Notes: generated from the letters alone by a model not told the origin. A DNA stretch of 64,000 bases from Lepidodermella squamata (GCA_047495785.1 JBLDXI010000050.1:1-64000); one strand, 5' to 3'; shown: positions 1 through 63,189, counted from the first letter of the stretch. Numbers and translations are program-made.

Positions 1-3000
1 CCATCTCGTGAGAGTGGGATGAGCTGCGGGATGTGCGGGATGCACAGCGGGATGAACTGCGGGAGGTGCGGGAACGAAGTGCGGGATGAGGCATCCCGCA
101 CCTTCCCGCAGTCGATGCGGATGCAAAGTTAAAACCTGATTCTGGGCTACTGTCAGCGCGAGTAGGATCGTGACAACGAACATCACTCGATCTGGCTTGT
201 TTGCTTGCATCAGGAAAGCAGCTAATTCCAAGAAAGTGAGAACCAGACAAGGACCAATGATGTTGAGAAGGTAGTAGTTGGGCCTCCTCCTAAAGCTTAG
301 CGAGAAAACAGCCACGCTGACTTTGCTTCCAATGGTCGGAGCAGACAACAATTTGATTTCCCATTTCGTTTCCTTAGGCAGAATCTCCCACTGGGCAACT
401 GGCGACAGAGCATCAGGCGTTATCATATTCAGCTCGGAGAATGCAGTAAGATTGACAGAGCGATGGATGCCCAAACTTGATCTGCACGTCTGCGTATCGA
501 ACGGGAACTTTCGAAGGTCCATTTCACAGGTTGACATGTACACACCCACTCTCGACCAGTAGAACTGCATGTTCAGATAAGTTTCATCGAATGGCTTGAT
601 TATGAAGACAAAATCGTCCCCGAGTTGGCTGTTGACCATGTAGACGTTATCAGGGCTTGATCTGAATGTGAGAGGGGGCAGCCAGTAGTCTTCTTTACTG
701 CCCACAAACACTCGAGAAGGACCGTCAACGTCACTGGGATATCCTCCTTTTTTGCAAGTCGAAACGTTCCAATGCAGCTGAATTATACCCGACAAAGTGA
801 TTGTCTCAGCAACTTCGTCGATCTTGAAAAATTGGTCGACTACGAAAATTGCTGAGACGTCAGTTGCACTGCCGTTGTTGGCGGAGCGCTTCTGTCAGCC
901 GAGAAGTCGTGGCATGAGCTCTTCGCAATGTCCGAGTCTCGAATTTTCGCGTAGCAGTTTCTTTGGCTAGCTGGGGCATCGCAGCTTCTGCCTTCTGCTC
1001 CACAGAGAGTGTCTGCGGTGGTGGGGCAGGGGTGGTCGTAGTAGTTGTTGGAGCGGTTGTTGTTTCGATACTCGAGTCGTGGTTGGAGCTAAAGTTGTAT
1101 TAACAGCACGAGTCGTTGTTTGCATTGGTGACGTAACAGCAATCGAACGTGTCGTAGTATTTGCAACTTGCCCTTAAAAAAATGCAATATTGGCTGTTGG
1201 CCTTGTGGTTGGAATAGTCGATGCAATAACAGTCGTGGTCAAGGTCTTTGAAGTTGTACTAGTCTGAATGGACGAAGTTGAAGTTGCAACGCTCGAAGTT
1301 GTGCTTGTTGTTGAGATGTTCAGTTTTACTGGAAATTAACAAGTGAATCATACAATTTTATGCAATTTTCAAACGGAACTCATTTTCAATTTGACATAGA
1401 ATCCGCTAAGTTGACTTTGCGAGCCGCCTCTTGGATGGTAGAAAACTTGCAATTCCCGACTTCTGTCAGCATTTGAGAGGTTTGACATTAATTGCTCGGT
1501 TGTTTTCGCGTCCGATGCTGAATCTGTGTAAAGTAGGATAGAAACTCTTCCCCTGTATCATAATTTATTGGATGCAAAGCAAGAATTCGTGCTCTTTCAT
1601 TCGAAACCGAGTAATTGAGTACCGCATATCTGTAAGGGGACGCGATATAGGGAATACGTATCAAGGTATGCAAACTTACTGAAGTAACCGATCGTCTGGT
1701 ATTTTGATCCTCCACGTGCATATTCTGCTCATTTTATCGACGAGTGGCGTGGCTTTAACACCAATTATTGCTTCATCGAATGTCCAGTCGATAGTTGTCA
1801 AGGGATTGCAGTAACTGGGGATCTCAGGAAACACTTCAGACCCGAGCGCTGACTGAGAACCTTCGGGACTAACTTGCTCGAAATAGATTTCGAGATGCAC
1901 ATAGCATGTGGTTTCATTTGTGTTGAACGTGATAAGCACCGCGGGGCTTTTGCTGGGTGAAAGATATCGTATTATCAGGTCCCATCTCGCTAGTGCTGAA
2001 GAGCCCGAGGCTGGGGGCAACGCCAGAGTAGCCTGCGTCGAGAAATTCCGTGCGACTAAGCGTTACCCAGATACCTTTTTTCCCATCGCCATCTACCATG
2101 TCAACATATAATTTTGAAAATTTCAGGGCCTTTCCAGAATCAGCGAAGATTCTCCACTGAAGTTGCGCAAGATATCCAAACCATTCAATGTCGATGACGC
2201 CGTTTGCAAACCTCTGATTGTTGAGCTCCGTGAGATGAACCAGTAGTTCGATGTGATTCGGTTATCGGCTGTATACTGGCATGATGGGCCGAAGGTCTTA
2301 TCTGGGCACCTGCAAGAGAATCCGTTGATACATTGCCCCGGGCCACACTGCGGCGAGCATTGACCTAGCCGGACGACTTGAAAAAGAACAAATGTTCACT
2401 CGAAATACTACGTCAAACATTCACTTACGGCTATCGCAATAATCGCCACTGAAGCCATAATCACAATTGCAGAAGCCAGTGCTGTTACACTTCCCGTAAT
2501 TGACACACCAATCTTTAATATGATATGTATTATCCCGTAATAATACTTATATGTGTTCAGGTCACCTACCGCCTGCGCAATTCGATGGTTGCACGTTCCA
2601 CGAATTATTTTGAAGGCATCGATGCTGGCTGATATTTTGTTGTTGAGCCACACCTGAATTGTATCGTTGAAGTTGGTGTATTTAGGGATATCACTCTCCG
2701 GAATATCCTGCCAATCGTAAGATTTTGCTACGCTTGAACCATTCATGTACTTGTATCTGGCGAGAGCTGTTCGAAATCCAGGGCATGCCGAGAGAGCTGG
2801 AAAAAAATGTATGAAGTACTCAGGTATTTTCTATAATTTTTAAGATCACCTTCGCAGGCTAGCTGCGCCATCGCAACAACGGTGAACAATTTTTTGAACG
2901 ACATTTTCAAATCAAAAATGCGTTCTGACACGCAGGGTAGGCTTAGATGAATCCCAGCTGTAAAACAGGATATTGCAAGTTTCAGAGCTATTTTCGTATT

Positions 3001-3715
3001 TCATAAATGTGTTATTACTACAGGAATAGCCGCAGAGTCAACAGCAATAATAATACCGGAGAAAAACATCCATTTGACCTCGCGAAAAGGACGGGCAAAA
3101 CGGATTCAGAAATCCTTCGCAAACCACGGCAGAAGTCTTGATATCAGGTAGGGAAGAATATTTTCAGATTCCAGTAGCATTTATAGTAGTTTCCGAAGGC
3201 CCTGATCAAGATTTTCAAACCTGCATGTCTCTAGCTATCCCAGTTAAGACTGTTTGAAATGTTGTCGATATCGCTCTGTCAGCCCGGCTGATTTCAGGCG
3301 ATTTGTTGAGCATCAAGCACCCTGATTTCTAAGAATAATAATCTTTAGAAATAGGACTTTCTGATTTTAAATTACTCAATTAGTCCCACTAAGGTCCCTA
3401 AATTCTCTTGTGACTGCAAACACGGACAAGAGCCGGTCTGAAAAATCAGAATTCAGCTTTCCACGCGACAGTTCTGAAGAGTTCTCACTGATTCCCGCTG
3501 ATTCGTACATTTTCAGAGATTTTGGAGCGTGTGTTAGTGGAAAAACTTCAGATTTTTCTCGCTTCGCTCGATTTTTTACCTGAAATGACTTCGGCGAATA
3601 CAGCAACAATTTTTGTCCATCCCTGGCAGCTCCAGAATCCAAGATCGCACCCTGCTTTAAATGCTAAAGCTTTTAGGGTTAATAAACATGATCCCTGGCC
3701 TAGTTCATGAACTTC
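1..3715. repeat. Inverted duplicate of about 8935-12630 (continues beyond window start)
   Basis: Reverse complement matches 8935-12630 almost base for base (ORFs 2743-2931 and 9720-9908 are identical; 278-562 matches 12087-12371). Breakpoint at ctagttcatgaacttc (3700-3715) / gaagttcatgaactag (8935-8950). Differences seen are almost all 1-nt indels. Confidence 0.95.
136..2904 (-). CDS. Inverted copy of the type-1 EGF/CUB-fused Cys-loop channel gene, interrupted after M2 by the same TIR element; many 1-nt indels
   Basis: ATG 2904 (MSFKKLFTVVAMAQLACE), same exons as 9747-12513; TIR end tgcaaagtta at 122-131. Frameshifts may be sequencing errors. Confidence 0.8.
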
Positions 3716-4071
3716 GAAAACAAGATTTTTCTCCCTTTCCAGCCGCCCTCTGATCAAGCTGATATTGCTCTGTTTTTGTGAACATCGGTTTGTTCGGAAA
3801 TTGAAGAAAGAGGCTAATAATAGCATGAGTAAATAATCCGGAAAGGTTCATGAAAATTTCAAAATTCGACAACAATTTTAATTATAAGCGAAATCAGCCG
3901 CGCTGTATCTCACTTCAGTCATTCACTGATCAAGCAGATAATTGCAAAAATTCTGTGAGCATCGGTTTGCTCGGAAACGGAAAAGCGACGATAAAAAATA
4001 GCATGGATTAACAATATCCGTGGAGTTTCATGCCAGTTTCACGGATGCGCGGGTCTCACACTTGGTCGATC

Positions 4072-7000
4072 ATGCGGTTTCGAAGTAACGGTAACCATCC
4101 TTGTGACTTTGCAGCTAGCCTTCGAAGGTAGACTGTCAAATTTTTCAAATTGTACTCTCAAGATTGATTCACCATTTCCAGGGCCAATCAGCATGCCCTG
4201 GATTAAGAACTGTACCCGGGCAGTACCAATACATGAATGGTTCGAGCGAGGCGACGTCCTACGTTTGGATAAACGCAGCCGAGGAAGACGTTGTGAAGTC
4301 GAAAAACTTCAATGACACGATTCGAGTGTTGCTGAACAATCAAGTCGTCAGCACACATCGATGCCAGAGCAATGGTACATGGACGTACCGCCGAGAGATT
4401 GCATACCTGGCGGTAAGAGCTTTCCCTATAAGCATTTTGTTAGAAGTTACTCGCAGTAACTTAACATAGAAAGAGCTTAATACTCATTAATATGCGAAAC
4501 TATTTTCAAGATAATTTCTCTTTTAGAATCGTGTCCCAATTCCGGAATTTGCGATGGCAGTGGTATGTGCAAATGCCGTTTTGGGTTTTCAAGGCGCATA
4601 TTGCGATAGCTGTAAGTGGAATTGCTTTAAAGTAATACAATTCATGCAATTTTCGAATTAAGCTGCGTCCTTTACTTTGTGCATCGCTTCTTGTGGCAAG
4701 GTTGACTGCCTAAGTAGTTTCGTCTGTCAATGCCTTGGTAATACATTCGGCCCAGCCTGTAAACATGAAGCGGAAAAACGATTCAGCAACGCTTTTTGGT
4801 ACATCGCACCGTGGACTACAATTCGTGGCGTTCAAAGTGGTGTACTCAAAATTCATCCTTCGGAAACAATTCCCTTAACCAATGGCGAATTTTCGCAGAT
4901 GCTGGGAAGGTTCTGAGGTTTTCAAAGATGTACTTGGTAGCAGTTAAGAGAGTGGGGATCAAATTACAGAAGATGAGGTTCGTATCGAATTTTACGAGGC
5001 TAGCTACACTGTCTCCTCTGGCTATGAAGACGTTTTGCTTCGTTCAAGGCCAGCGATCTTGGACCTGGGAATGACGCTAACATCACCAGCGTAGGCTCTT
5101 CAGTTCTCGTTTGGATCACCACAAGTGTGAATTCAGTTTACTCCCGTTACGAAATTTTTTTCGAACAAGTGGATGCCGAAGTTCCAACCCCTCCAAGTGC
5201 AAAGAAAGTCCCGGATATCTATGAAGCCTGTAACGCCTTGGTAACTATCGATTGGCCCTTCGATGAAACGATCATCGGCGTCGAACCGACAACTCTTGTC
5301 AATAAATTCTCTAACAAATGTACTTGGCGCTTTAAAATTCCAGACGGGAGTTCACTCGAGTAATTCGATTTTCTATCCCGTTTTCAAGATTAATATCTTA
5401 AATTTTTCAGGTATGCTTTGCTTAACTACACGGCCAAGGGTGATAACGGTTTTTACCTGGAAATGAATACGATAAACTACGACACTGGCAACGTTTTCAC
5501 ATGGATCTCATCAAATGACATCAAGAACAGCGAGAGGATGCTACCAGGGAAGATGATGGCCGTTAATTTTGTGAATTCCCATCGCGAGTTTCATGTCTTC
5601 TACACGTCAAGAGGCAGCAACTCGGAAAAAACAAATGGATTCTACATCAAGCTGAAAATGAGTTTCGTTATGCTTTTTTATGTTGCTTATTGATTATCTT
5701 CCATCCAAAGCATCGAGCACTACAACGGTTGCGAATTCAAGCACAACAACGACGAGTCTTGCTTCGCTGAAGAGTGACGTATCGAGTACTACAACATCAT
5801 TGACAGCGGTTGTGAGTTCAAGCTCTTCAACGACGAGTTTCGGGTCGCCGAAAAGTAAAGTATCGATTACTACGACAGCGATTTTGGATTCAAGCTTCAC
5901 AACAAAGGACCTCGCGCTGATGACGAGTAATGCAAGAAATTCACAGAATAACGAAGCGACGGGAAGCAATCAAGGTTCATCATCCCGACAGATGTCATTC
6001 GCTGAGAAAGTTGCAGCTGCTTTTCCAACGCTACCCGAGGAAACAGCCACACCCAGGTTGCGGGATTCAGATATTTTGAATGGGAAGTGCCACGACTTCA
6101 CGGCTGACAGGAGCGCTCCGCCCAACAACGGCACTGCAACTGATATCGGGACGATTTTCGTCATTGATCAGTTCTTCGGAATCAAAGAGGTTGATGAGAC
6201 TATTACGATATCGGGAATCATTCAGCTCCGATGGAACGTGACGACGTGCAAGCGAGAAGATATTCCTGTCAAAATAGAAGGGCCGGAACGTGTGTTTGTT
6301 GGCGATATGTCAAAATTTTGGCTGCCTCCGTTAACATTCAGATCAAGCCCAGACAATGTGTACATGATCGACAGCCAACTAGGGGACGATTTCGTATTCG
6401 TTGTCAGGCCTACTGATGACATTTTCCTAAACATGCAGTTCTACTGGTCGAAGATAGGTGTCTTCGAGTCAACCTGCGATATGGACCTTCGAAAGTTTCC
6501 TTTCGATACGCAAACTTGCGAGATCGAGTTCGGCATTCATCGCTCTGTCAATTTGACGGCATTTTCTGAGCTAAAAATCATACCACCAGATGACCTGTCC
6601 CCCGTTGCCCAGTGGCAGATTCTGCCTGAGGAAACAAAATCCAAAATCAAACTGTTGTCTGCTCCGACCATTGGTAGCAAAGTCAGCGTGGCTGTTTTCT
6701 CGCTGACTTTCCGTAGAAGGCCCAACTACTATCTGTTGAACATCATTGGGCCTTGCTTGGTTCTAACATTCTTAGAGCTGGCTGCTTTCCTCATGCAAGC
6801 CAACAAGCCAGATCGAGTGATGTTCGTAGTCACTATCCTGCTGGCTCTTACAGTTGCCCAGAATCAGGTCTTGCAAGATGTCCCGAAAAGTGCAGCGATG
6901 ATCCTTCTGACCGAGTACATCTTCTACATGTCAGTCTACACTGGACTGGTCAGCATGTACAACCTGTTTCTCGGCTATTTCGCGACTGAAATGACGAAAT

Positions 7001-7137
7001 CAGCTAACAAGATGCTGAAATTAGGTCGCCTCCGCATTTCAGTCTTGAGTTCGCTGAATGCAATCGGCTTCGCAATGGCAGTTGCTTTTTTCTTCGGAAT
7101 CAACATGTACGCGATGTATATTCTCAAATACGAATAA
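4072..7137 (+). CDS. Type-1 Cys-loop ligand-gated ion channel subunit with N-terminal Sushi-like/EGF/EGF/CUB-like/CUB-like domains and Ser/Thr stalk (multi-exon; 5' exons carry indels)
   Basis: ORF 5680-7137: FWLPP, Cys-loop CDMDLRKFPFDTQTC, RRRPNYY pre-M1, four hydrophobic helices. Upstream exons are colinear with the paralog at 9747 (MNGSS...NFNDTI, CQCLGNTFGPAC, CTWRFKIPDG, EFHVFY...GFYIKLKM). Short GT-AG introns, e.g. 4128-4181 and 5661-5710. Confidence 0.85.
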
Positions 7138-7525
7138 GGCTGATTGATGAGACTTAAAACCTAATTTTCATAATTGGACTCATTCTATATTCGGTGATAT
7201 CAGCGATGACGAGCTGGCTAATGCCCAGCTCTGAACTTAATTCTCGATCTATTCATGCTATTTCTATGCTATTGTATACTATGTTTCGTCCAAGATTTAA
7301 TATATAATCCTTCTCGAAGAAATAACAGACCTGTATAGAATCGGAAACATTCGAAAATATTATCATCAGTTTGTTATTGGATTCGGACAAAAGTAGGAAA
7401 TATATTGGAGTAAAATTACGTTTTTCATCCACAACATTCAATCAATTGAAGTTACGATATAGAACTTCATATTATCGACGTTGGTTATTGGCTATAGAAG
7501 TAAAGATTCCCGCGCAGAAGTGAGA

Positions 7526-8751
7526 TTAAAATAACATTTCTCTAAAAAGTAAGAAGTCAGGTATGGTAACAGCCAGACAAATGATGACAAAAGCCGCTAT
7601 ATCCAGAGCTCTGATGTAGGTCAACTTAGAGCTGGTAAAGCATCTCCGACACCAGGCGAGATTAGCCACGCCACATGTGACAATCGTGTAGATAGTCAAA
7701 ACGCCGCCAGCGACGAATTTCCACGTAATCAAAACAGAGATGAAGACGACTTCAGAGGATTCTGGGGTCAGCGATGTGATCGCACTCAGAGTCATTGAAT
7801 TCGCTAGGACAGCTGTTATGTTTATCGCAGATCTAGGAAAATAATCAATAACAATTCGAGATTAAGTACTTCTAAATAGATTTCTTACCTATTAGGGTCA
7901 CTTGGGTCGATGATTAGGGCGATCATTTGAATGAAGAATAGCGTGAAAGGTGGTATGAAAATTAAAGGCACGTAGTAGATCGCGCGGCGTTGCAGCGTTA
8001 CATTGTAATTAATTTGGTCGTAAGATGAATGTCTACCAGTTCTTAGATAATCATTAACCTGCACGATTGAGACGAATTGCCAAACTTCAGCGCTGCTGAG
8101 GAACTTCGGAGTCACATCATAAGGTTGCATAGTGAAGTTGACGTCGCTTGTCAAGTGGCTTGATACAAATTTCAGACCGCAAGAAAACTTGTCAAAAGGA
8201 AATTTACTAAGCGAAACGTCCATACAGCTGGATACAAAGTTGCCGATTGCAATGATTGACGCAGCGAAGACTCGATTTTTGCTCGTCACTTTGATCCAAT
8301 CACTCTTCGTTGCCATGACATTAGGCTCGCCGTTAGCTGTGTTCTCATGTAAGACTTTCGGGTACCAAATTGGCCGGTCCTCCGGGCGGCCAACTGGTAA
8401 GTTCAAGGTGATTTGGTCTTTCCTGCATACGATTTTAGATTGGTTGTCAGCTAGCATCGAGCAGTCGACTGGCTTCTCGCAATTGTAACGCCAATCGAAT
8501 TGAAGCGCGCCGAAAATTGTCATCGTTCGTTCTACGTCATTGATGTCAACGAGCCGGAGGAAAGTGAACGACGCATTTACAGCCAAAGGTTGCGGATTAG
8601 GGCAGCGTAATCTCACGTCGACGGGTAGATCGGGTGATGTCATGTCGGGGTAGCTGTTCGTTAAATCGTCCCATACCTGAGAGATAGTTGGCTTTGTTGA
8701 GGCACAAACTGGGGCAAACAGAAATAGAATAAAAGCTAGTCGAAATTTCAT
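7526..8751 (-). CDS. Type-2 compact Cys-loop ligand-gated ion channel subunit (2 exons: 8751-7889, 7832-7526)
   Basis: Signal peptide MKFRLAFILFLFAPVCAS; LVDINDVERTMT, IWYP, CMDVSLSKFPFDKFSC, LQRRAIYY, M1; 56-nt intron 7833-7888 joins DPNR/SAINITAVL (M2), then M3 and M4. Reading frame is intact. Confidence 0.92.
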
Positions 8752-9746
8752 TGCAAAATGCGGAATTGAAGCACTGGAAAAAATTAGGGTTGATTGAAGC
8801 AGCGATGAGCACAGCGGAAGTTGGCAATTTTTCAAATATTTACTCGTGAGCGAAATCATTCAGTGAGGCCATCATTTTCTGTAAAACTCGAAGCCGGAAA
8901 TCCGACAGAACCTCTCCTCTGGGATTCGGAATTAGAAGTTCATGAACTAGGCCAGGGATCATGTTTATTAACCCTAAAAGCTTTAGCATTTAAAGCAGGG
9001 TGCGATCTTGGATTCTGGAGCTGCCAGGGATGGACAAAAATTTGTTGCTGTATTCGCCGAAGTCATTTCAGGTAAAAAATCGAGCGAAGCGAGAAAATCT
9101 GAAGTTTTTCCACTAACACACGCTCCAAAATCTCTGAAAATGTACGAATCAGCGGGAATCAGTGAGAACTCTTCAGAACTGTCGCGTGGAAAGCTGAATT
9201 CTGATTTTTCAGACCGGCTCTTGTCCGTGTTTGCAGTCACAAGAGAATTTAGGGACCTTAGTGGGACTAATTGAGTAATTTAAAATCAGAAAGTCCTATT
9301 TCTAAAGATTATTATTCTTAGAAATCAGGGTGCTTGATGCTCAACAAATCGCCTGAAATCAGCCGGGCTGACAGAGCGATATCGACAACATTTCAAACAG
9401 TCTTAACTGGGATAGCTAGAGACATGCAGGTTTGAAAATCTTGATCAGGGCCTTCGGAAACTACTATAAATGCTACTGGAATCTGAAAATATTCTTCCCT
9501 ACCTGATATCAAGACTTCTGCCGTGGTTTGCGAAGGATTTTCTGAATCCGTTTTGCCCGTCCTTTTCGCGAGGTCAAATGGATGTTTTTCTCCGGTATTA
9601 TTATTGCTGTTGACTCTGCGGCTATTCCTGTAGTAATAACACATTTATGAAATACGAAAATAGCTCTGAAACTTGCAATATCCTGTTTTACAGCTGGGAT
9701 TCATCTAAGCCTACCCTGCGTGTCAGAACGCATTTTTGATTTGAAA

Positions 9747-12700
9747 ATGTCGTTCAAAAAATTGTTCACCGTTGTTGCGATGGCGCAGCTAGCCTGCGAA
9801 GGTGATCTTAAAAATTATAGAAAATACCTGAGTACTTCATACATTTTTTTCCAGCTCTCTCGGCATGCCCTGGATTTCGAACAGCTCTCGCCAGATACAA
9901 GTACATGAATGGTTCAAGCGTAGCAAAATCTTACGATTGGCAGGATATTCCGGAGAGTGATATCCCTAAATACACCAACTTCAACGATACAATTCAGGTG
10001 TGGCTCAACAACAAAAATATCAGCCAGCATCGATGCCTTCAAAATAATTCGTGGAACGTGCAACCATCGAATTGCGCAGGCGGTAGGTGACCTGAACACA
10101 TATAAGTATTATTACGGATAATACATATCATATTAAAGATTGGTGTGTCAATTACGGGAAGTGTAACAGCACTGGCTTCTGCAATTGTGATTATGGCTTC
10201 AGTGGCGATTATTGCGATAGCCGTAAGTGAATGTTTGACGTAGTATTTCGAGTGAACATTTGTTCTTTTTCAAGTCGGTCCGGCTAGTCAATGCTCGCCG
10301 CAGTGTGGCCCGGGGCAATGTATCAACGGATTCTCTTGCAGGTGCCCAGATAAGACCTTCGGCCCATCATGCCAGTATACAGCCGATAACCGAATCACAT
10401 CGAACTACTGGTTCATCTCACGGAGCTCAACAATCAGAGGTTTGCAAAACGGCGTCATCGACATTGAATGGTTTGGATATCTTGCGCAACTTCAGTGGAG
10501 AATCTTCGCTGATTCTGGAAAGGCCCTGAAATTTTCAAAATTATATGTTGTCATGGTAGATGGCGATGGGAAAAAGGTATCTGGTAACGCTAGTCGCACG
10601 GAATTTCTCGACGCAGGCTACTCTGGCGTTGCCCCCAGCCTCGGGCTCTTCAGCACTAGCGAGATGGGACCTGATAATACGATATCTTTCACCAGCAAAA
10701 GCCCCGCGGTGCTTATCACGTTCAACACAAATGAAACCACATGCTATGTGCATCTCGAAATCTATTTCGAGCAAGTTAGTCCCGAAGGTTCTCAGTCAGC
10801 GCTCGGTTCTGAAGTGTTTCCTGAGATCCCCAGTTACTGCAATCCCTTGACAACTATCGACTGGACATTCGATGAAGCAATAATTGGTGTTAAAGCCACG
10901 CCACTCGTCGATAAAATGAGCAGAATATGCACGTGGAGGATCAAAATACCAGACGATCGGTTACTTCAGTAAGTTTGCATACCTTGATACGTATTCCCTA
11001 TATCGCGTCCCCTTACAGATATGCGGTACTCAATTACTCGGTTTCGAATGAAAGAGCACGAATTCTTGCTTTGCATCCAATAAATTATGATACAGGGGAA
11101 GAGTTTCTATCCTACTTTTACACAGATTCAGCATCGGACGCGAAAACAACCGAGCAATTAATGTCAAACCTCTCAAATGCTGACAGAAGTCGGGAATTGC
11201 AAGTTTTCTACCATCCAAGAGGCGGCTCGCAAAGTCAACTTAGCGGATTCTATGTCAAATTGAAAATGAGTTCCGTTTGAAAATTGCATAAAATTGTATG
11301 ATTCACTTGTTAATTTCCAGTAAAACTGAACATCTCAACAACAAGCACAACTTCGAGCGTTGCAACTTCAACTTCGTCCATTCAGACTAGTACAACTTCA
11401 AAGACCTTGACCACGACTGTTATTGCATCGACTATTCCAACCACAAGGCCAACAGCCAATATTGCATTTTTTAAGGCAGTTGCAAATACTACGACACGTT
11501 CGATTGCTGTTACGTCACCAATGCAAACAACGACTCGTGCTGTTAATACAACTTTAGCTCCAACCACGACTCGAGTAATCGAAACAACAACCGCTCCAAC
11601 AACTACTACGACCACCCCTGCCCCACCACCGCAGACACTCTCTGTGGAGCAGAAGGCAGAAGCTGCGATGCCCCAGCTAGCCAAAGAAACTGCTACGCCG
11701 AAAATTCGAGACTCGGACATTGCGAAGAGCTCATGCCACGACTTCTCGGCTGACAGAAGCGCTCCGCCCAACAACGGCAGTGCAACTGACGTCTCAGCAA
11801 TTTTCGTAGTCGACCAATTTTTCAAGATCGACGAAGTTGCTGAGACAATCACTTTGTCGGGTATAATTCAGCTGCATTGGAACGTTTCGACTTGCAAAAA
11901 GGAGGATATCCCAGTTGACGTTGACGGTCCTTCTCGAGTGTTTGTGGGCAGTAAAGAAGACTACTGGCTGCCCCCTCTCACATTCAGATCAAGCCCTGAT
12001 AACGTCTACATGGTCAACAGCCAACTCGGGGACGATTTTGTCTTCATAATCAAGCCATTCGATGAAACTTATCTGAACATGCAGTTCTACTGGTCGAGAG
12101 TGGGTGTGTACATGTCAACCTGTGAAATGGACCTTCGAAAGTTCCCGTTCGATACGCAGACGTGCCAGATCAAGTTTGGCATCCATCGCTCTGTCAATCT
12201 TACTGCATTCTCCGAGCTGAATATGATAACGCCTGATGCTCTGTCGCCAGTTGCCCAGTGGGAGATTCTGCCTAAGGAAACGAAATGGGAAATCAAATTG
12301 TTGTCTGCTCCGACCATTGGAAGCAAAGTCAGCGTGGCTGTTTTCTCGCTAAGCTTTAGGAGGAGGCCCAACTACTACCTTCTCAACATCATTGGTCCTT
12401 GTCTGGTTCTCACTTTCTTGGAATTAGCTGCTTTCCTGATGCAAGCAAACAAGCCAGATCGAGTGATGTTCGTTGTCACGATCCTACTCGCGCTGACAGT
12501 AGCCCAGAATCAGGTTTTAACTTTGCATCCCGCATCGACTGCGGGAAGGTGCGGGATGCCTCATCCCGCACTTCGTCCCGCACCTCCCGCAGTTCATCCC
12601 GCTGTGCATCCCGCACATCCCGCAGCTCATCCCGCAGCTCATCCCGCACATCCCGCAGCTCATCCGGCACCTCATCCCGCACATCCCGCAACTCAGGGTG

Positions 12701-14120
12701 CGGGATCCCGCAGCTCATCCCACTCGTCCCGCAGCTCATCCCGCAGTGTCATCCCGCACTTTGGGCGTATGAAATAAAAAAAAACCGGAGGCCAGCAGGA
12801 ATCGAACCAGTGACTGCGATCACCAAACGCGCACACTAATCTATTGCGCCACCGGTCGATTCACATTAACATATACAGAACGGCGATACTTATATCGCGC
12901 TGGAATTACGTGAAAATAAGTCAGTCAAATTGGCGTGCGGCCAAGACCAAAATCGCGATTTCTGAAGCCGATTTCGACACGATCGGCGGCGAATTGGGTC
13001 AGCGGCCGCGAATAGTTTGTACAGAATTTCGAGGGCTATCCGCCGATATAAGATTTATGGGCCGGCGTTACTTGGTTCGCGCTGAAAATGCGTGCAAAGT
13101 CAGTCAAATTGGCGTGCGGCCAAGACCAAAATCGCGATTTCTGAAGCCGATTTCGACACGATCGGCGGCGAATTGGGTCAGCGGCCGCGGATAGTTTGTA
13201 CAGAATTTCGAGGGCTATCCGCCGATATAAGATTTATGGGCCGGCGATACTTGGTTCGCGCTGAAAATGCGTGCAAAGTCAGTCAAATTGGCGTGCGGCC
13301 AAGACCAAAATCGCGATTTCTGAAGCCGATTTCGACACGATCGGCGGCGAATTGGGTCAGCGGCCGCGGATAGTTTGTACAGAATTTCGAGGGCTATCCG
13401 CCGATATAAGATTTATGGGCCGGCGTTACTTGGTTCGCGCTGAAAATGCGTGCAAAGTCAGTCAAATTGGCGTGCGGCCAAGACCAAAATCGCGATTTCT
13501 GAAGCCGATTTCGACACGATCGGCGGCGAATTGGGTCAGCGGCCGCGGATATTTTGTACAGAATTTCGAGGGCTATCCGCCGATATAAGATTTATGGGCC
13601 AGCGATATGTGGTTCGCGCTGAAATTGCGTGCAAAGTCAGTCAAATTTCTGGTCAAAAATGGCGGCAGAACACATACATTCCATTTCCGCAAGCATCTAG
13701 TAGCAAATTAGAATTAATCTGGCAACAGCCATATGTAACAAGTGCGGGATGATAGCTGCGGGATGATGTGCAGGATAGCTGCGGGATGGATGCGGGATAC
13801 TGATGCGGGACGATGCTGCACTGATGCGGGACGTGCGGGATGCAAAGTTATATTTGGAAGATGTCCCGAAAAGTGCTGCGATGATCCTTTTGACCGAGTA
13901 CATTTTCTACATGTCGGTCTACACTGGATTGGTCAGCTTTTACAGCCTCCTGCTTGGCTATATTGCGACCGATATGGCAAAATCGGCTAACAAAGTGCTG
14001 AAGTTCGGCTGCCTTCGAATCTCATTTCTGAATCTGCTTAATGCATTCGGCTTCGTGATGGCTGTCGCCTTTTTCTTCGGAATCAATCTTTATGCGTTGT
14101 ACGTTCTCAAGTACGAATAA
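9747..14120 (+). CDS. Type-1 EGF/CUB-fused Cys-loop channel subunit with 1.33-kb insertion just after M2
   Basis: Exons give MSFKKLFTVVAMAQLACEALSACPG..., EGF1 C-AGDW-C-VNYGK-C-NSTGF-C-N-C-DYGFSGDY-C, EGF2 CSPQCGPGQCINGFSCRCPDKTFGPSC, CUB-like CTWRIKIPDD...LQVFY...SGFYVKL, Thr-rich stalk, Cys-loop CEMDLRKFPFDTQTC, M1-M2 to 12513. M3-M4 resume at 13848-14120 (LEDVPKSAAMILLTEY...LKYE). Confidence 0.88.
12775..12858 (-). ncRNA. tRNA-derived Pol III-like unit (pseudo-tRNA or SINE head) inside the TIR element
   Basis: Minus strand reads accggTGGCGCAATAGattag (A-box-like) ... GGTTCGATTCC (B-box) ... ccgg then a T-run terminator. No convincing anticodon arm. Confidence 0.55.
12918..13647. repeat. 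179-bp tandem satellite, 4 full copies plus partial
   Basis: Unit starts aagtcagtcaaattggcgtgcggcc at 12918, 13097, 13276, 13455, partial at 13634; repeated ORFs are spaced 179 nt. Confidence 0.95.
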
Positions 14121-16444: not shown

Positions 16445-17410
16445 TTAGCTAAGCATTAACTGAAACAGAATAAAGTCTGTGATCGTAACAGCCGATCCAA
16501 TGATGAGATAAGTAGCTAGATCAAAAGCTCTCATATACGTCAACTTTGTACGAACAGCATATTTTCTTAAACAATCAACATTAGCCAGGCCACATGTGAC
16601 AATTGTATAATCGCCGCCGGCCATAAATTTCCACGCAACCATGACAGTGATATAGACGACCTCGGAAGATTCTGGAATCATCGATGTAATCGCAGCTATA
16701 GTCATCGAATTCGCTAGAACAGCTGTAATGTTCAAAGCAGATCTTTTGAAAGAGAAAACGATCACTTTCCTGTGGACAACAATTCACATGATATCTCTAC
16801 CTATTAGGATCAGCTGGGTCGATTATTAAGGCGACCATTTGGATGAAAAACAACGTATAGGGTGGTATGAAAAGGATAGCTAGATAGAATAGATAGAAGA
16901 TAGATAGAAAGATAGAATCGCGTTGTAGCGTGATTGTGTACTTAATTTGGTCGTAAAACTTGTTGCCACTTTTAAAATAATCACTTTCTGTATCGATTGA
17001 TACAAAATTCCAAATTTCTGCCTCGTTTATGAAAGTTGGGAGAACCGTAAACGGCTGCATCGTGAAGTTGACGTCGCTTGTAGGATGGCTCGATACAAAT
17101 TTTAGCCCGCAAGAGAACTGATCAAACGGGAAACGAAACGTCCATACAGCTTGATACAAAATTTCCTGTCGCTTCCATGGTTGCCGAGAACACTTGATTA
17201 TCACTCTTTATATGTATCCATGTCGTATATATGTTATGTATCCATTCGCTTTTTGAGGAGATCATGTACGGCTCACCGTTTGCTGTGTTCCCGTGAACAG
17301 CTCTCGGGTACCAAACTGGTCTCTCTACAGGGAAGCCAACTGGCAGGTTAAAGGCGATACTGTCGTTTTCGCAGGCAGTTATCGAATGGTTGTTTCCAAG
17401 TAGTGAACAG
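16445..17410 (-). pseudogene. 5'-truncated type-2 Cys-loop channel pseudogene
   Basis: FPFDQFSCGLKFVSSHP and M1-M4 intact-looking, but multi-base deletions and duplications (16880-16920, 17140, 17200-17240) and homology ends near 17410 with no signal peptide. Confidence 0.85.
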
Positions 17411-19148: not shown

Positions 19149-22100
19149 TCTAATACGTATAGAAGTTTCGCCAACCTTAAACTTAAAACGTCAGATGCAC
19201 ATAAACCAGTGTGATTTTCGCACCCACGCGGGTGTGCATCCAATTTGCAGCGCGTTGGTGCGACAATTTAACTCGCTACACACAATCTAATCAACTAAGA
19301 AAATTCATAGAAAACCGTTGGCGCAAAATTTAAATTTTAAAACATAAAATTTTAAAAACAAAATAAATATTATAAAATAAATTTAATTGATTAATTTGTT
19401 TAATTATAGTTCATAACTCATAGCGCGCAATGTAAATTTGAAATGACGTTCGTCCGCTCGCCGCTGTTGTTAGCGCTCGCTCGCTAACTGCTCAGCAGCT
19501 CAACTGCGCTAATGCTAATGCTAATGCTGCAAATATAATGCTCCATGTCTCGAAGGCCCAATCTTCCGATTGATCAGCCTTCGACAAGCCGTCAGCCGTC
19601 ATGTTAATTCACCTGGTAAGTAAACCTAGCCCATGTCGTACTTTCTCCTCATACTTGTGTTTAGCTCCAGTTCCTTCGTCTCCTGTCATTAGAAATTTGG
19701 TTGTTCGAAGTTCTCCTGCACCTTCTTCTCCGGCCTCTCCAGTTATTCGCACCTTGATTGTGAGAAGCTCCCCAGTTCCCGCTTCTCCCCCGCTTCTGAA
19801 CCGTTTAACCATAGCTTCTCCTATACCATGTTCCCGCCGTAAGACATATTCTGCATTGATGTGTAACCTATTTCTAAGTATTTCATTTTCAGCTCTTGCA
19901 ATAAAACGCGCTTCCAACTGCAATGATAACACATTTAAACGTCCGAGAAGTGCTTTTAACGATGTTAATGACCGTAGGTTTAATCATTCAACTCATTAAC
20001 ATGAATTTATTCTACCTCCCGTGTCACAGTAACTATTGAAATAGAAGACGATGATGACGACTACACCAATCAACGTGTCCAGACACCGCTACCTTCTACA
20101 CCCATTGATATGGGTATGCTTCATAGTGATGTTATTAAAATCCTCCTTTAATGAAAATTTCAGATAACTTACCTGACATCGACGTTCCTTATCTGCCACC
20201 GTCTCCGATACCCATTGTGCAAGGTTTGCGAAGTGACAACATCGCAATTTGCAAAAAGCGTATTTCATTTTACATTAGAACAACTTCATCTCGAAGAATT
20301 TGTCAATAACGCTAACCCTCAACAAGCAGTTAAGAGACCGGCAGGTTACCATATGGCTAGAAGACCTGTCTTATTCGACGAGTTGGTTACACCTCATAAT
20401 GCCGGAAGCATGGATCAACGCTGCACACACTGTGAAGCGGAATTCTTTGTTGAAGAAAGAGCTTGCCGTTCATCTGGTATCAACCCTGTTTTTTCGGTGT
20501 GTTGTGCTGGAGGGAAAATTGATGTCGCTCCATTTCCTGATCCGCCTCCTTTGATCCGTAAATTGTTAACAACCAACTCGCCTCAAAGCAAACAGTTCCG
20601 TCATGAGATACGCAGCTATAATTCGGTATTTGCATTCACATCGATTGGTGTCAATGTCGATAAGAATGTTTCATGGTCTACCTTTCGCTTTGCTGGAGAA
20701 TTGTGTCACAAGCATGGTGATTTACTACCCAATGGATCTGATAGACCCAAATTCGCTCAAATGTACATTATTGATGTAGAAAACGAGGCCAAGAATCGGC
20801 TATCTGCAATGCCTGATCTTGATCCTATTCTGCTATCACAAATTCAAGACGAAGTACATACTTATTGCCCTTTTGTAAATTTCTACAAGCGGGCTTACGA
20901 GCAGTTGCTAAAATCGCCTAATTTAGTTCTTCGACTTCGGTGCGATAAGGATGTTGATCGCCGCCGTTACAACCTCCCTTCCAGTTCTGAGATCGCTGTT
21001 CTAATACCTGATAATCCATCAATTAAGGAAGGACGTGATATCATTCTGCGACTGAAGGATGGGGGTGTCAGAAGACTTTTCGAATCAGCGCCACTTTACG
21101 ATCCGCTGCACTATGTTTTGATGTTTATGCAAGGCCGTCATGGCTGGACATATACCATGACCCGTGCAGCAAATAGTGATCAAAAGTTGTCTGCTCTCGA
21201 TTATTATGCATACTTATTTCAACTCCGTTCACCGAGTTATCTTTTCCTGTATGGTCGTCTGTTACACCAATTCGCCTGTGATGCTTGGTATCGCATCGAA
21301 TCCGATCGCCTGCGTTATGTTCAAGATCACCAAGCTGAAATCCGCTCTGATCTATATCAAGGTTTCATGGATGCTATCAATGACGGAGAGCGAGATCTCG
21401 GGAGAATGGGTAAACGAGTAGTTCTGCCATCTTCATTTATTGGGTCTCCAAGACACAATGCTCAATTATTCCCAGATTCTATGGCCCGGGTAGCACACTA
21501 TGGCAAACCTGACCTTTTTGTTACGATGACCTGTAATCCAAACTGGAAAGAAATACAGGATAATTTGCTTCGAGACGAGAATGGCGTGCCCTTACAAACA
21601 GCTGCGGACCGGCCAGATCTATGTGCTCGCGTGTTTTACATCAAACTGAAGTCACTTTTGGAAGATCTTAAAGACAATGCAATTTTCGGAAAAGTGAAAT
21701 GCCTAATATATGTAATAGAATTCCAAAAGCGGGGTCTACCCCACGCTCATATTCTCATAATTCTTGATGATGAAAGCAAAATTCGTACCGTTGAGCAACT
21801 GGATGCAATCATCGCCGCGGAAATTCCCGACAAGGAACGAAACCCTCGGCTGTTCGATATTGTTACTCGACAAATGATGCATGGTCCATGTGGTCCTTCT
21901 CACCCGAAATGTCCTTGCATGAAAGATGGTCGATGCTCTAAAGATTTCCCGAAAAATTTCCGCGACGAAACATCTATGAGCGAAGATGGTTATCCCAAGT
22001 ACAAGAGACCCGACAATGGCAGACGAGTTGAAGTTCATGGAGCACAACTCGACAACAGATGGGTTGTGCCGTATAGCCCTTTTCTTTCGCTGAAATATGA

Positions 22101-25100
22101 TTGCCACATTAATGCAGAATACGTTGGATCGGTTGATTGCGTCAAATACTTATATAAGTATGTTTATAAGGGCAATGATCGTTCAGTTTTTGCTATCGGA
22201 CAATTGATGGGAAATTCAAATATAAATGAGATCAATGAATACAAAGAGGGTCGATATATTTCTACATCCGAAGCTTTTTGGCGCCTATATTCCTATCATC
22301 TTCATGGCGAATATCCGCCCGTCTGTCGATTGGACTTACATCTAGAGAATCAGCAGGTTAACATGACTTTCATATTATGGAATGTTAAACTTTTTACCAT
22401 TTATCTTCATTCAGCTTATCTATTTCAATGACGATGGACAAGTTATAAACGGACTTCCACGTGGCAAGGTTCCAAAGGATACCAAGTTGATGGCTTTCTT
22501 CAAGCTCTGTGCGTCGGATCAACAAGCAAGACAGTACACCTACAAGGAAATTCCACAGCACTATACGTGGAGTGTCAAGCATCACAAGTGGGAGAAACGA
22601 AGGAACAGCATTTTCAGCATCGGTCGTATTTACGGTGCCCCTTTCAATTCTGAACTATTCGCTTTGCGCCTCCTTCTTAATAACGTCCGCGGCCCAACCA
22701 GTTTTACTAACATTCGCACAGTCGACGGTTTTCAATGTTCGACCTATCTTGAGGCTTGCAGAAAACTGAACCTCATTGAAAACGGGGACAGCGTTCGAAC
22801 TTACTTGGCAGAAGCCGCGTTCCAACGTCTCCCCCGCAGCTTTCGCAGCGTTTTCGCTATACTTCTTTTCTTCGCTAAGCCGTCTCAACCGGAGTTGCTA
22901 TGGGAAGAATTCGTGGATTCATTGTGCGAGGATTTTCTGTACCAGGAAAGGATTTCAAAACCCAACGCCGTTTTATGTGATCGTCTGAAAAATAAAGCCC
23001 TCATCGAAATCAACAAATTTCTTTCACACCACCGAGTAACTTTGGCTGATTTTCCAAACATGCCCATTCCTACTGGTACATTGGCTTCTGTTCTCAGTGA
23101 AGAACTGGAATATGATCGAAACGTTTTGCTAAGCCAGCTTGAAGAGCAAAGGAAATTATGGACTACTCAGCAATGGTTCGTAATCGAAAAGGTTGAGGCC
23201 GCTATCGAGTCGTTTACAAGTGGTATGCGACAGGCCTCGGTATTTTTCCTTGACGGATTTGGCGGTTGTGGCAAAACCTTTGTTTATAACTATCTGCTTC
23301 GAAGTGTTCGATCTTTGGGACAAGTTGCTCTCGGTTGCGCTTCATCTGGCATTGCGGCTCTGTTGTTAGATAATGGCCGAACTGCCCACTCCAGATTTAA
23401 AATTCCCCTCAACGCCAATTCATTCAGCACATGTAATATCGGCTTCAAGACTGCGCTGGCAGAACTAATAAGGCAAACTGTTCTGCTTATCTGGGACGAG
23501 GCTCCTATGATGAGCCGTTTCAATTTCGTTGCTCTGGACAGAACGATCCGTGATATTACTAAAGTTGACGTTCCGTTTGGAGGTAGAATTTTTGAAATAT
23601 TATATTTGTTAAATGGATTTCATTCCTTCATTTCCACAGGAATCCCTGTGATATTTGGCGGAGATTTCAGACAATGCCTGCCAGTATTAAAACACGGCTC
23701 GAGGGCTGAGATTTTTTACTCCTGTATTACTAAAGCTCAATTCTGGCCGAATGTCAACATTTTAAGACTTTCTAAAAATATGCGCGTTATTTCTGACCCG
23801 GCTGTTGCAGATTTCATCCCGTGGCTTTTGTCTGTTAGCGAATCAAATTAAAATTCTTATCCCCGGCAGCGTGATCCTCCCCCCGCCCATAAAGCAGGCT
23901 CATTCTGAATCGGACCTGATCCGAGCCGTCTACGGCGAACTACCCACGAATTCAAGCTCGCAATATATCGCTGAACGATGCATCTTAGCCTCGAGGAACG
24001 ACGAGGTGGAACTTTTAAACAATAAAATTTTAGATCTCATAAATAGTGATAGCGTTACTTTTTTTAGTGCTGATACTGTTAGCGATCAAAACGCCCGTTA
24101 CCTTTTCCAAATTGAAGTAGTCAACAAATTTAATCCGCCAGGTCTTCCTCCTCACTCTCTTCGGCTTAAGGTCGGTGCACCTATTATATATTATTACGCA
24201 ATTTAAATCCTGGAATGGGCCTCTGTAATGGCACCAGGCTAAAAGTTTCTTCTCTAGATAATGGCATCTTAATAGCTGAGATTCTAAACGGCAGCCATAC
24301 CGGTCTCATAGTTCAAATTCCTAAAATAACACTAGACTCAGATAAAGATACTCTTCCTATCACCTTCAGTAGGCATCAATTTCCTGTTAGATTAGCATTC
24401 GCCATGACTATTAATAAGAGCCAAGGACAAACTTTCTCCGTTGTAGGTCTTCATTTAGCTAACCACCATGTCTTCACTCACGGACAACTATATGTAGCTC
24501 TTTCTAGAATTAGGGATCCACGTAATTTAATCTGTTTCGTTTACTATGATAAGAAATCTAAAAAGTATTACACCATCAATGTAGTGTTTCATGAGGTTTT
24601 GCTGCAATAATAAATACGATTTTTAAACTAATCGGTGTTCCCCTTTTACAAATTTTTAGACATATCTATAACTTCTTTTTGACATAATTATAATGCTACC
24701 TTCATGGTATTTCACTGACAAATACCGTGTTCAGCATGAAATACCCTACACGTACGTATTTTACTACCGATCAGCAAGGGAAAACGTGTCGAGATGCGAT
24801 CTCCTCAATTTATTCAATAACATTTTCGAGATATGCGGTGTTGGCTTCGTCGATAAATGTCAAGGTTTACAATTCATCAATGGTACTCCGGATAATCGTT
24901 ACTCACTGAATGAAGATGATGACCAGCGATAATGACTACGACTCGGATATGGGGTTCTTTTTCATATGGGTTATTACCTGGCGCACGGTACATCTGGAAC
25001 ATTGGGCAAGGGCCATGAAGAGCTACATCGATTGGGCAGGCTTCCGCCGTCTCTCCGACGAAATTTGCCGATTTGGATGCCTCCAAGAAGATATTCATTT

Positions 25101-25418: not shown

Positions 25419-25538
25419 TAATAATATAAGGAATTAGGAAAAAGCAGGATGTGGCTGCATCAGCTGATACCGACAGTGATGGATCGTGAAACCTAAAGAT
25501 GACCAAGGGCCCTAAGGGGCCATGCCGAAACGCAGCTG

Positions 25539-26355
25539 TTGAACAGAAGGCAGAAGCTAGCTAAAGAAACTGCTACGCCGAAATTTCGAGATTCGGACAT
25601 AGCTAAGAGCTCATGCCACGAAGACTCTGCGGACAAAAGCTCCCCGCCTAACAACGGCAGTGCAACTAACATCTCGGCGATTTTCGTGGTCGACCAATTT
25701 TTTGGAATTCACGAGGTTCGATTACGTTATCAGGGACTATTAAGCTGCATTAGAACATTTCTACATGCAAGAAGGAGGGTATCCCAGTGAACATTGACGA
25801 GTGTTTGTAGGCAGTAAAGATGACTACTGGCTGTCTCCTCTGACATTCAGATCTATCCCTGACGATGTGTACATGGTCAACAGCCAACTGGGGTACGACT
25901 TCGTCTTCATAATTCATAATCAAGCTGTTCGATGAAACGTATCTGAACATGCAGTTCTACTGGTCGAGAGTGCGTGTGTAACCTGTGAAATTGACCTTCG
26001 AAAGTATCCATTCGATAAGCGAGATCAAGTTTGGCATTCATCACTCTGTTAATCTTACTGTAGAAATCTCTGAGCTGAAAATCATTGTATGGTTACTTTC
26101 CCGCTTTTTAAGTTCCGCTATTTTCGTCTGGATTTTGGCGGCCCGGCCGGTTCGGACCGAGCTTTTCATTTTGACCCCGGCATCTCTAACGAAACCCGAA
26201 ATCAAACTCTTGTCTGCCCCGACGATCGGTAGCAAAGTGAGCGTTGCTGTTTTCTCGCTTAGCTTGTAGAAGGAGGCCCAACTACTACTATTGAACATCA
26301 TCGGCTCATGCTTGGTCCTCAGATTCTTGGAACTGGCTGCTTTTCTGATGCAAGC
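25539..26355 (+). pseudogene. Degraded fragment of a type-1 channel (LBD to M1)
   Basis: LAKETATPKFRDSDIAKSSCH, SAIFVVDQFF, YLNMQFYWSRV, EIKLLSAPTIGSKVSVAVFSLS with many deletions and an internal insertion; Cys-loop destroyed. Confidence 0.9.
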
Positions 26356-26484
26356 TGATTTCCCAGCTAATTAGCTAATTGCTAGAGATTTTCTCGAAAT
26401 TTCTAGCTGATTCAATTTTAATATCTAGAATCTAGAAACCTTACTCGCGTATTGTATTTGTTTGCCGAGTTAGAAAAAGACTTA

Positions 26485-54755: not shown

Positions 54756-55469
54756 CAGAGTTTTTTTTAAGGGGTGGACATGGTTGACAATGTCAACACC
54801 AAAGCGGGTCAATGTCAACACCAAAACAAGGCGCATCACCCGGGCCAGACAGCAAAATGAGAATTTATCCCACTGATTTGTTAATTTTTAGAGGTTTAGG
54901 AGCGTGTTTCAGTTGGAAATCTTCAAAGTTTTCTCGCTTCGCTCGCTTTTTAGCGGAGTTTAGCAAATACAGGAATTACAATTTCCATTCTTGACAGCTC
55001 CGGGATCCAAGATCGCACCCTGCGGCCGAGGGAGAGAATTGAACCGCCTTAGAATAACCCTTTTGATTTAAGCTCTTATTCCTGAAAAATGTCCACCGAA
55101 TTGAAAAATAACAAGAACATTTCTGAGATTGACTAATGGCTTTTATATTTTCTTACGTTTACTCACGGGTAACATCGTGCAAGTCGCTAGAGTGCCTCGC
55201 GGAGAGATTCGTCATCATGACGCGAAAAACATCCTATTTTAGGCCACTTTCAGCCAAAATTACGTGAAAGACCGTTAGCTAAAGCTCGCTGCGCTCGCAA
55301 GTTTACATATGTCTAATCATTGCTCACTATCAACAGAATCGAAGTATTGAGAAATGACGATATCGCGAGCGAGCGTAGCGAGCGAGCGAACGATTTTTAT
55401 ATCCATGTCTTTATGTCAACACCAAAAAACATAAAGTCAACACCATTGGATTCCTTAAAAAACACACTG
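54756..55469. mobile_element. hAT-like non-autonomous element
   Basis: Imperfect TIRs cagagttttttttaagg / ccttaaaaaacacactg, catatac on both flanks, subterminal gtcaacacc repeats; interior shares sequence with 3510-3655 and 8995-9140. Confidence 0.65.
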
Positions 55470-62445: not shown

Positions 62446-63189
62446 CGTTAAATCCGCGACAGCGAAAGAAAAAATGATCAAAATCTGCATTGCCAAGCAT
62501 TTTTCGTGATTCAAGCTACCGGATATTGCCGATTTTCGCAATATATCTCTATATTGACATTGGGCTATTGAATTTTTACAAATTCCTAGCCTTAGAGTTG
62601 TGCTCAAATGAAAAAATCAACGTGGTGTTTCTGGGCCAAATTTGTGGACTCCGCCACCTCCTGGAGTTTGGAATCACGCGAATTAAAGGTTCCGGAAAAC
62701 CGAACAACTGCCTTTTTCGTTGATTGAGCACACCCTAATTCTTTGGACTACTATTAGTCCCAAGCCCAAATTACGAAATAACAAGTACATAAATTCAGCA
62801 AAAGAATGAATTCCTGGGTGTCATGCCTCCCCTGATTCTATTGACCTTCCTTCTCTATCCAGATCAGCCAACTTCAAATCCATGGTCCAAGTATACAGTT
62901 AGTAAGGAGAGGAGGCCTAGAGCGAAGACCGCGGAACTGGTAGGGATAACAAAATCGAGTCCCCCATTTGCTCTTTGACAGAGCTCACCATGTGGAACTG
63001 GTAGGGATGATTCCTAGCAGTACTTCGCTCTCTAAGAGGAGGGACCTATCGTTCGACCATCTTCAAACTTTGCGAAAAACTTAAAGGGTCCTCCATGATT
63101 ATTTGCAAATGTTGGGCTCAGAATGCTCGATTTACCGCTGAGAGCTGGACCCAATCGGACCCAAATGGTTATCACATTTAATTGATATC

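Follow-up and report, generated by a model that had tools for sequence, protein, structure and literature searches.

Eukaryotic subunits of the pentameric class of ligand-gated ion channels (pLGICs) are textbook two-domain proteins, composed of a ligand-binding domain (LBD) plus a transmembrane domain (TMD), with or without an intracellular domain (ICD). In every pLGIC subunit, the N-terminus sits at the top of the extracellular domain (ECD). In the EGF-TM7/adhesion G protein-coupled receptors (GPCRs), including CD97 and GPR126, exon-shuffled EGF or CUB heads are carried on a Ser/Thr-rich stalk above a multi-pass core. N-terminal domains of pLGICs have been observed in prokaryotic members only and not in eukaryotic homologues (PMC9897478). 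The LEV-10 (CUB), LEV-9 (CCP) and OIG-4 proteins of Caenorhabditis elegans form an extracellular scaffold of L-AChRs; NETO and SOL-1 are CUB auxiliaries of ionotropic glutamate receptors (PMC9083331, PMC9304021). In this study, a 64,000-nucleotide stretch of Lepidodermella squamata DNA (GCA_047495785.1 JBLDXI010000050.1:1-64000, hereafter the window), which is eukaryotic DNA with introns of approximately 50 nt, was analysed, and a candidate Cys-loop channel gene with covalent EGF/CUB-like head modules is described. A first-pass annotation of positions 4072-14120 had proposed two such paralogs plus an inverted copy, each splicing in phase from a signal peptide through the head and a Ser/Thr stalk into a channel exon. 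The downstream paralog (copy 2, 9747-14120, + strand) probably reads as a single gene, encoding a pLGIC subunit precursor of approximately 925 aa.

As modelled, the copy 2 product would resemble DeCLIC and other prokaryotic pLGICs in carrying cis extracellular domains N-terminal to the LBD that are mobile relative to the core (PMC9897478). The DeCLIC type differs in that it comprises bacterial Pro-loop channels with two jelly-roll lobes packed on the ECD, lacks a mucin tether and uses unrelated domain families. LEV-10, LEV-9, OIG-4, NETO and SOL-1 are similar in that extracellular CUB/CCP-type modules associate with ionotropic receptors and control clustering and channel properties. However, these proteins act in trans as separate polypeptides, whereas the modules of copy 2 would be covalent to each pore subunit, and no sequence homology was detected in the search of the head exon against 1.84 billion representatives. 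The adhesion GPCRs have a 7TM core with a GAIN autoproteolysis domain; the fused channel differs in its core, and no GAIN-like element was seen. No description of an EGF/CUB head, stalk and Cys-loop channel in one protein was found in the literature.

All exons of copy 2 lie on the + strand. Exon 1 (9747-9801) contains the start codon and the signal peptide MSFKKLFTVVAMAQLACE, whose n-, h- and c-regions are recognisable in translation, and ends in phase 1 at the donor GTGATC. Exon 2 (9855-10082) encodes a C...CxxNxxW Sushi-like segment with two Cys of its own together with the first Cys of EGF1, and exon 3 (10139-10222) encodes the remainder of EGF1, which matches Pfam EGF_2; both exons are phase 1-1. 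Exon 4 (10275-10968) encodes EGF2 with its six Cys, CUB-like module 1 and the initial third of CUB-like module 2. The remainder of this module is encoded by exon 5 (11019-11269), which ends ...GFYVKLKM at the weak donor GTTCCG, and exons 4 and 5 taken together are again phase 1-1. Downstream of the stalk intron (11270-11320, 51 nt), exon 6a (11321-12513) encodes a 107-aa Thr/Ser/Pro stalk, the LBD with its Cys-loop, M1 and M2 (Neur_chan_LBD, E 1e-12), and exon 6b (13848-14120) encodes M3, an M3-M4 loop of approximately 20 aa, M4 and the stop codon. The five short introns (53, 56, 52, 50 and 51 nt) are all GT-AG and in frame. In the translated model, a single 925-aa frame stays open throughout, provided that a 1334-nt insertion is removed at GT12514/AG13847. 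The order of modules is thus signal peptide, Sushi-like segment, EGF1, EGF2, two CUB-like modules, stalk, Cys-loop LBD and M1-M4. The phase-1 symmetry of the head exons and exon sets, following an exon 1 that itself ends in phase 1, is characteristic of exons shuffled into a phase-1 intron that lay between leader and mature channel.

The channel exon of copy 2 cannot supply its own leader, as the first-pass annotation had recognised, because its frame is closed upstream by a TAA at 11311-11313 (8 nt before the acceptor) and its first in-frame Met lies mid-stalk without a hydrophobic segment. In contrast, the ordinary pLGIC genes of the window at 7526-8751 (-) and 61585-62607 (-) carry the leader in the LBD exon. 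The other paralog (copy 1, 4072-7137, +) is colinear with copy 2, and its stalk intron spans 5662-5710 (49 nt), correcting the earlier 5661-5710. The stalk-intron donor is alike in copies 1 and 2 (AAAATGA/GTTYCG, in the same phase), while the remaining intron sequence has diverged; the two copies have diverged to a dS of ~1. Between copy 1 and copy 2, dN/dS of the channel was 0.13 (LBD-M2) and 0.12 (M3-M4), and the head showed a pN of 0.31 versus a saturated pS of 0.74 (pooled, matched frames). These values indicate that the head and the channel have both been coding for most of their history, under purifying selection, which would not preserve a channel that had no leader.

Reads were compared over 7200-12880, that is, over the copy 2 region, using run X1, labelled 'RNA?' and 2015, and run X2, which behaves as DNA. 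The depth of X1 was zero over the neighbouring gene (7200-8909) and the spacer bins 9100-9669, and 1.95 on the repeat bin 8910-9099; X1 covered every head-exon bin as well as the channel. One X1 contig stops at 10968 and runs on as ATATGCGGTA, identical to the ten bases with which exon 5 opens at 11019; the exon 4/5 splice (10968/11019) is therefore observed in X1. A gene of the copy 2 type is partially transcribed. A single fused gene is favoured because of the in-phase splicing, the leaderless channel exon, the conserved donor and phase, the purifying selection, and the coverage by X1 with its exon 4/5 junction; we infer the splice between exons 5 and 6 of copy 2.

The channel part is certainly a Cys-loop pLGIC. 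The + strand open reading frames (ORFs) 5680-7137 and 11407-12777 matched PF02931 (Neur_chan_LBD) with scores exceeding the gathering score (E 4e-12 and 1e-12, respectively), and the match to PF02932 (Neur_chan_memb) covered M1-M3 only, at 27.6 bits, slightly under the 28.1 cut-off. The channel exon of copy 1 (5711-7137, +) encodes the Ser/Thr stalk, the LBD and M1-M4 and is intact, whereas that of copy 2 is interrupted; the proposal of a complete LBD with four transmembrane helices in one exon therefore applies to copy 1 and not to copy 2. In a PDB search, the nearest solved structure to the copy 1 channel exon was the Torpedo acetylcholine receptor (AChR) delta subunit (2bg9_C, E 5.8e-22), followed by alpha6 and alpha7, and the alignment with Torpedo delta extended through M3. 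The AlphaFold2 (AF2) model of this exon comprised a disordered stalk (pLDDT ~25), then a beta-sandwich and then four long helices at 348-371, 377-399, 403-446 and 455-484, as expected of M1-M4. In copy 1 the Cys-loop, C-x13-C around FPFD, reads C-DMDLRKFPFDTQT-C; its copy 2 counterpart is C-EMDLRKFPFDTQT-C.

The M2 segment is PDRVMFVVTILLALTVAQNQ. Its Asp falls at -1', where cationic channels have Glu, and positions 6' and 9' are Thr and Leu; the pore would probably be cation-selective. The loop-C region contains no vicinal CC of the kind found in alpha-type acetylcholine (ACh) binding, and His occupies the loop-B Trp position ('efgihr' versus 'kfgswty' in alpha6); these residues set the orthosteric site apart from a classical ACh site. 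The closest database relatives of the channel part among 5.8 billion clusters were ~25-30% identical and at most 30%. A word-index search with the entire channel ORF was dominated by Ser/Thr words; when it was repeated with the LBD/TMD only, the sole find was a scallop subunit at 25% identity, in databases that lack the proteome of the organism itself. The fused channel shares with the nicotinic subunits (Torpedo delta, alpha6 and alpha7) the LBD beta-sandwich, the C-x13-C loop with FPFD, M1-M4 and the M2 residues, and differs from them in its ~25-30% identity, the absence of loop-C vicinal Cys, the loop-B His, the short M3-M4 loop of ~20 aa and the ~540 aa of additional N-terminal modules and stalk. 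The fused subunit would be expected to form pentamers.

The Ser/Thr stalk was correctly identified at the outset. Across its 107 aa in copy 2, Thr accounts for 36%, Ser for 11% and Pro for 8%, and with the disorder predicted over the copy 1 stalk this is the composition of a mucin-like linker, which is probably O-glycosylated. In one X1 contig that starts at 11475, the letters just before the start match 11425-11436, which suggests a polymorphism of stalk length, with some allele or paralog ~38-39 nt shorter in the Thr-rich stalk (11437-11474).

The head modules are supported to different degrees. EGF modules were called on six Cys spaced C-x(4-7)-C-x(4-5)-C-x(5-10)-C-x-C-x8-C plus a profile match. 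Both proposed EGF motifs of copy 2 have the six-Cys spacing. EGF1 reads C-x4-C-x5-C-x5-C-x-C-x8-C, its first Cys being the last Cys of exon 2, and reached Pfam EGF_2 with a score of 22.4 bits (cut-off 22.1; E 1.6e-4); the best Pfam match of EGF2 was hEGF, which was not significant (E 0.21). The EGF call by profile is thus borderline. The CUB-like modules show the strand pattern ..W.I......L.F.......GF...Y; module 1 has a single Cys and no disulfide pair, and module 2 has a Cys pair, Cys311 and Cys341, at a spacing like that of CUB domains. In the ESM Atlas, where the scores for exons 2, 4 and 5 were all below the level that the tool counts beyond a lead, the ten best named clusters for exon 4 were all CUB+EGF families (tolloid, C1s, MASP; score 0.89), and exon 5 gave a weak CUB lead (0.60). 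A Foldseek search with the exon 4 model, whose matches count as leads only because the model is of low confidence, returned the spermadhesin CUB 1spp_B as the top PDB structure (E 6e-3, TM score 0.37). Against the Swiss-Prot AlphaFold database (AFDB), the top 20 were mostly EGF-CUB proteins (nas-34, Kremen-2, ovochymase, DMBT1-like and others). A phmmer search of the head against PDB gave only a selectin EGF at E>1. As the three weak leads (ESM Atlas, Foldseek PDB and Swiss-Prot AFDB) are concordant, the two modules are probably rightly named CUB-like. The nearest ESM Atlas clusters of exon 2 were Sushi/Sushi_2 (0.88), again a lead only, and the segment has two of the four required Cys, the third Cys of exon 2 belonging to EGF1; its identity as Sushi, the initial call, is unsupported.

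Several observations weigh against reading copy 2 as a fused channel with EGF/CUB-like heads. For the modules, Pfam CUB (PF00431) was not matched by exon 4 or exon 5 even at E<=10, Pfam Sushi (PF00084) was not matched in exon 2, and AF2 modelled exon 4, with the copy 1 pieces in the alignment, at low confidence (pLDDT 46). The head has no cross-species support, since HMMER with the 230-aa head exon found no homologue among 1.84 billion representatives; two matches were dismissed as spurious low-complexity. For the fusion itself, which extends to the cis N-terminal accessory domains known from DeCLIC, the gene model, phases and selection agree, but the decisive exon 5/6 junction (11269/11321) is not among the X1 and X2 contigs listed, and the depth there is ~2. 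That X1 is RNA is no more than probable, and paralogs are mixed in its contigs. No donor in the gene is weaker than that of the stalk intron (GTTCCG/GTTTCG), and translation into the retained intron would meet a stop after 4 codons in copy 2 or 12 in copy 1. The copy 2 channel exon is interrupted by a 1.33-kb transposable element (TE) in the M2-M3 linker. Finally, the assembly holds no clean copy: copy 2 carries the TE, the head of copy 1 is frame-broken and the inverted left arm is rich in indels.

This last group of observations raises the alternative that the fused gene type is real and the locus is decaying, with the head of copy 1 a recent pseudogene, copy 2 inactivated in this individual by the TE, and nothing functional produced here. 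Copy 1 bears on this directly. Its head (4072-5661, +) is colinear with that of copy 2 (exons ~4072-4127, 4182-4412, 4527-4611, 4663-5359 and 5411-5661), and the short introns proposed for both copies are thus colinear. As assembled, however, copy 1 contains at least six frame breaks in exons 1-4 (near 4090, 4385, 4585, 4855, 4957 and 5041), its ATG at 4072 is not in the frame of the hydrophobic core, and EGF1 is also out of frame. The model with homologous splice sites contains 39-45 stops, which favours decay. An exhaustive GT-AG path search, too permissive to serve as a chance test and applied only to the openness of copy 1, yielded no path of up to six short introns along which the frame stays open. 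Therefore, the proposal that both paralogs splice through was upheld for copy 2, which has one open frame, and not for copy 1. At 4385-4611 two frame changes compensate: the shifted frame stays open across the donor of exon 2 (phase 0) and through exon 3, returning to the homologous frame ahead of the exon 3 donor, at the cost of the EGF1 cysteines.

The inverted duplicate of copy 2 points the other way. It occupies 16-3718 (-), is 99.2% identical to 8932-12633 and extends through the first 118 nt of the TE. It lies outside 4072-14120 and is a duplicate of copy 2, and the gene at 7526-8751 (-) is an ordinary pLGIC, so that the inverted copy listed in the first-pass annotation did not survive as a separate fused paralog. 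In a self-comparison, the left (16-3718) and right (8932-12633) arms differed by 24 one-base indels, many at homopolymer runs, and only 4 substitutions. The X2 contigs had 0-3 differences each from the right-arm sequence and also agreed with exon 6a; the right arm keeps its ORFs and the left arm does not. The left arm thus looks like unpolished or artefactual long-read sequence and not real divergence, since its differences are mostly 1-nt indels with few substitutions and the right arm matches independent contigs. The density of breaks was ~1 per 190 nt in the copy 1 head and ~1 per 150 nt in the left arm, and zero breaks occurred across 5043-7137, with the copy 1 channel exon unbroken over 1.46 kb. 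Given the similar indel density in the adjoining left arm, the window from 1 to ~5050 may be of low quality throughout, and noise is somewhat favoured over recent pseudogenisation as the source of the copy 1 breaks.

The second element of the decay argument is the insertion in copy 2. The element (12518-13850, 1.33 kb) lies inside the gating-critical M2-M3 linker and has perfect 17-nt terminal inverted repeats (TIRs), TAACTTTGCATCCCGCA, four 179-nt internal tandem units and 9/12-nt subterminal CATCCCGCA-type repeats; it is non-autonomous. Removal in frame is possible in principle, as GT12514...AG13847 would excise 1334 nt and convert QNQ-VL-ED to QNQ-LYL-ED. An X1 contig with a loose end at 12515 runs on as C-TTGGAAGATG, homologous to CAGGTCTTGCAAG of copy 1. 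Splicing of the TE was considered as an explanation of this contig and rejected, as it reads ...CAGGT/C/TTGGAAG like copy 1 and not CAG/TTATATTTGG. Because the contig continues uninterrupted past 12515, an insertion-free version is transcribed in the X1 sample, and this transcript-like sequence comes from an uninterrupted version instead of the GT-AG spliced form, as expected of a decaying cluster. On balance, with the copy 1 breaks possibly assembly noise, the copy 1 channel exon unbroken and the TE removable in frame, decay of the whole locus appears unlikely, and the single fused gene remains the preferred reading.

A less probable alternative is that two adjacent genes are present. Exons 1-5 would encode a secreted EGF/CUB-like protein that stops just inside the stalk intron, and the stalk and channel exon would form a separate, leaderless unit that is non-functional or uses an unseen leader. 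The weak GTTYCG donor with its stop 4 (copy 2) or 12 (copy 1) codons on and the missing 11269/11321 junction fit this arrangement. However, the 49-51 nt between the units are too few to hold both a terminator and a promoter; the channel, leaderless and with its frame closed at 11311-11313, is under strong purifying selection all the same; and donor position and phase are kept between paralogs at a dS of ~1. Since a retained stalk intron stops after 4 or 12 codons, a secreted head-only isoform of the fused gene is conceivable. That the main isoform skips the head as an optional cassette, joining exon 1 (phase 1 end) directly to the stalk and channel exon (phase 1 start), is about as improbable: all cassette boundaries are phase 1, so that loss of exon 2, exon 3, exons 4+5 or all of them keeps the frame, and X1 depth is 1-10 on the head exons versus 45-50 on the channel, but the depth gap is confounded by paralog contigs (90-95% identity) piling onto the channel, the head is under coding constraint, and 50-nt introns make exon definition unlikely and long skips unusual.

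For the single fused gene, the following architecture can be proposed. The head modules would have entered by exon shuffling into the phase-1 intron between leader and mature channel. Five subunits would form the pore, with five flexible tethered heads projecting from the apex of the ECD. Such an N-terminal extension is sterically allowed, because the pLGIC N-terminus is at the extracellular apex, as in DeCLIC. The LBD would remain the site of gating. The heads would serve as a built-in extracellular anchor or capture module that places or clusters the channel at the matrix or at cell contacts, or they might instead concentrate ligand near the LBD; in cis, they would do the work of the LEV-10/LEV-9/OIG-4 scaffold and the NETO and SOL-1 auxiliaries. 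By analogy, a positional role, whether anchoring and clustering or ligand capture, is most likely, and it is favoured over force or allosteric coupling because a flexible 107-aa mucin-like tether would transmit either poorly. Gating by the head through a tethered ligand or contact, as the first-pass annotation had suggested, is possible and has no support here. More tentatively, the organism may possess a class of 'adhesion-type' Cys-loop channels, in which interchangeable heads are shuffled onto a mucin tether and the head takes part in activation, through ligand capture and presentation or as a tethered ligand on contact. Such a class, if true, would be a family of ionotropic receptors for contact or pattern recognition, unlike anything among known eukaryotic pLGICs.

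A metazoan-type Cys-loop channel with covalent EGF/CUB-like heads would, if true, overturn the generalisation that such N-terminal domains are confined to prokaryotes (PMC9897478). It would also represent a natural experiment in which CUB/CCP scaffolds of the LEV-10, LEV-9 and NETO kind are fused in cis, and would suggest a new coupling of extracellular recognition to fast ionic signalling. With its phase-1 cassettes, the gene would also be a clear case of an ion channel that acquired modules by exon shuffling.

The locus is arranged as the left arm, a 5.2-kb spacer with copy 1 (+) and the ordinary pLGIC (-), and the right arm with copy 2. The conventional gene in the spacer (7526-8751, -) has two exons (8751-7889 and 7832-7526) and its own signal peptide directly joined to the LBD, and corresponds to the minus-strand ORF 7885-8859, the third pLGIC ORF recognised. 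It belongs to a conventional pLGIC subfamily found at 7526-8751 (-), 16473-17166, 57302-58421 and 61582-62607 (-), whose members have their leader within the LBD exon, a single 56-nt intron following M1 and a tiny intracellular loop. The window is a pLGIC-rich and transposon-rich region. Helitron-type Rep/helicase ORFs occupy 20215-24610, comprising one of 738 aa with PF14214, then one of 489 aa and fragments, and their closest relatives are ~45% identical (fungi, plants and metagenomes). Directly downstream of the Helitron, a degenerate fourth fused-type channel copy (25500-26365) starts at the stalk/LBD boundary with ~79% nucleotide identity to the copy 2 LBD and broken ORFs, and it may be a captured or truncated fragment. 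A short dispersed repeat at 8910-9099, also present at 3493-3655 and 54868-55023, is a high-copy element, with an X2 word depth of ~4285 versus ~60-100 in the flanks and many divergent loose ends at 8993-9039.

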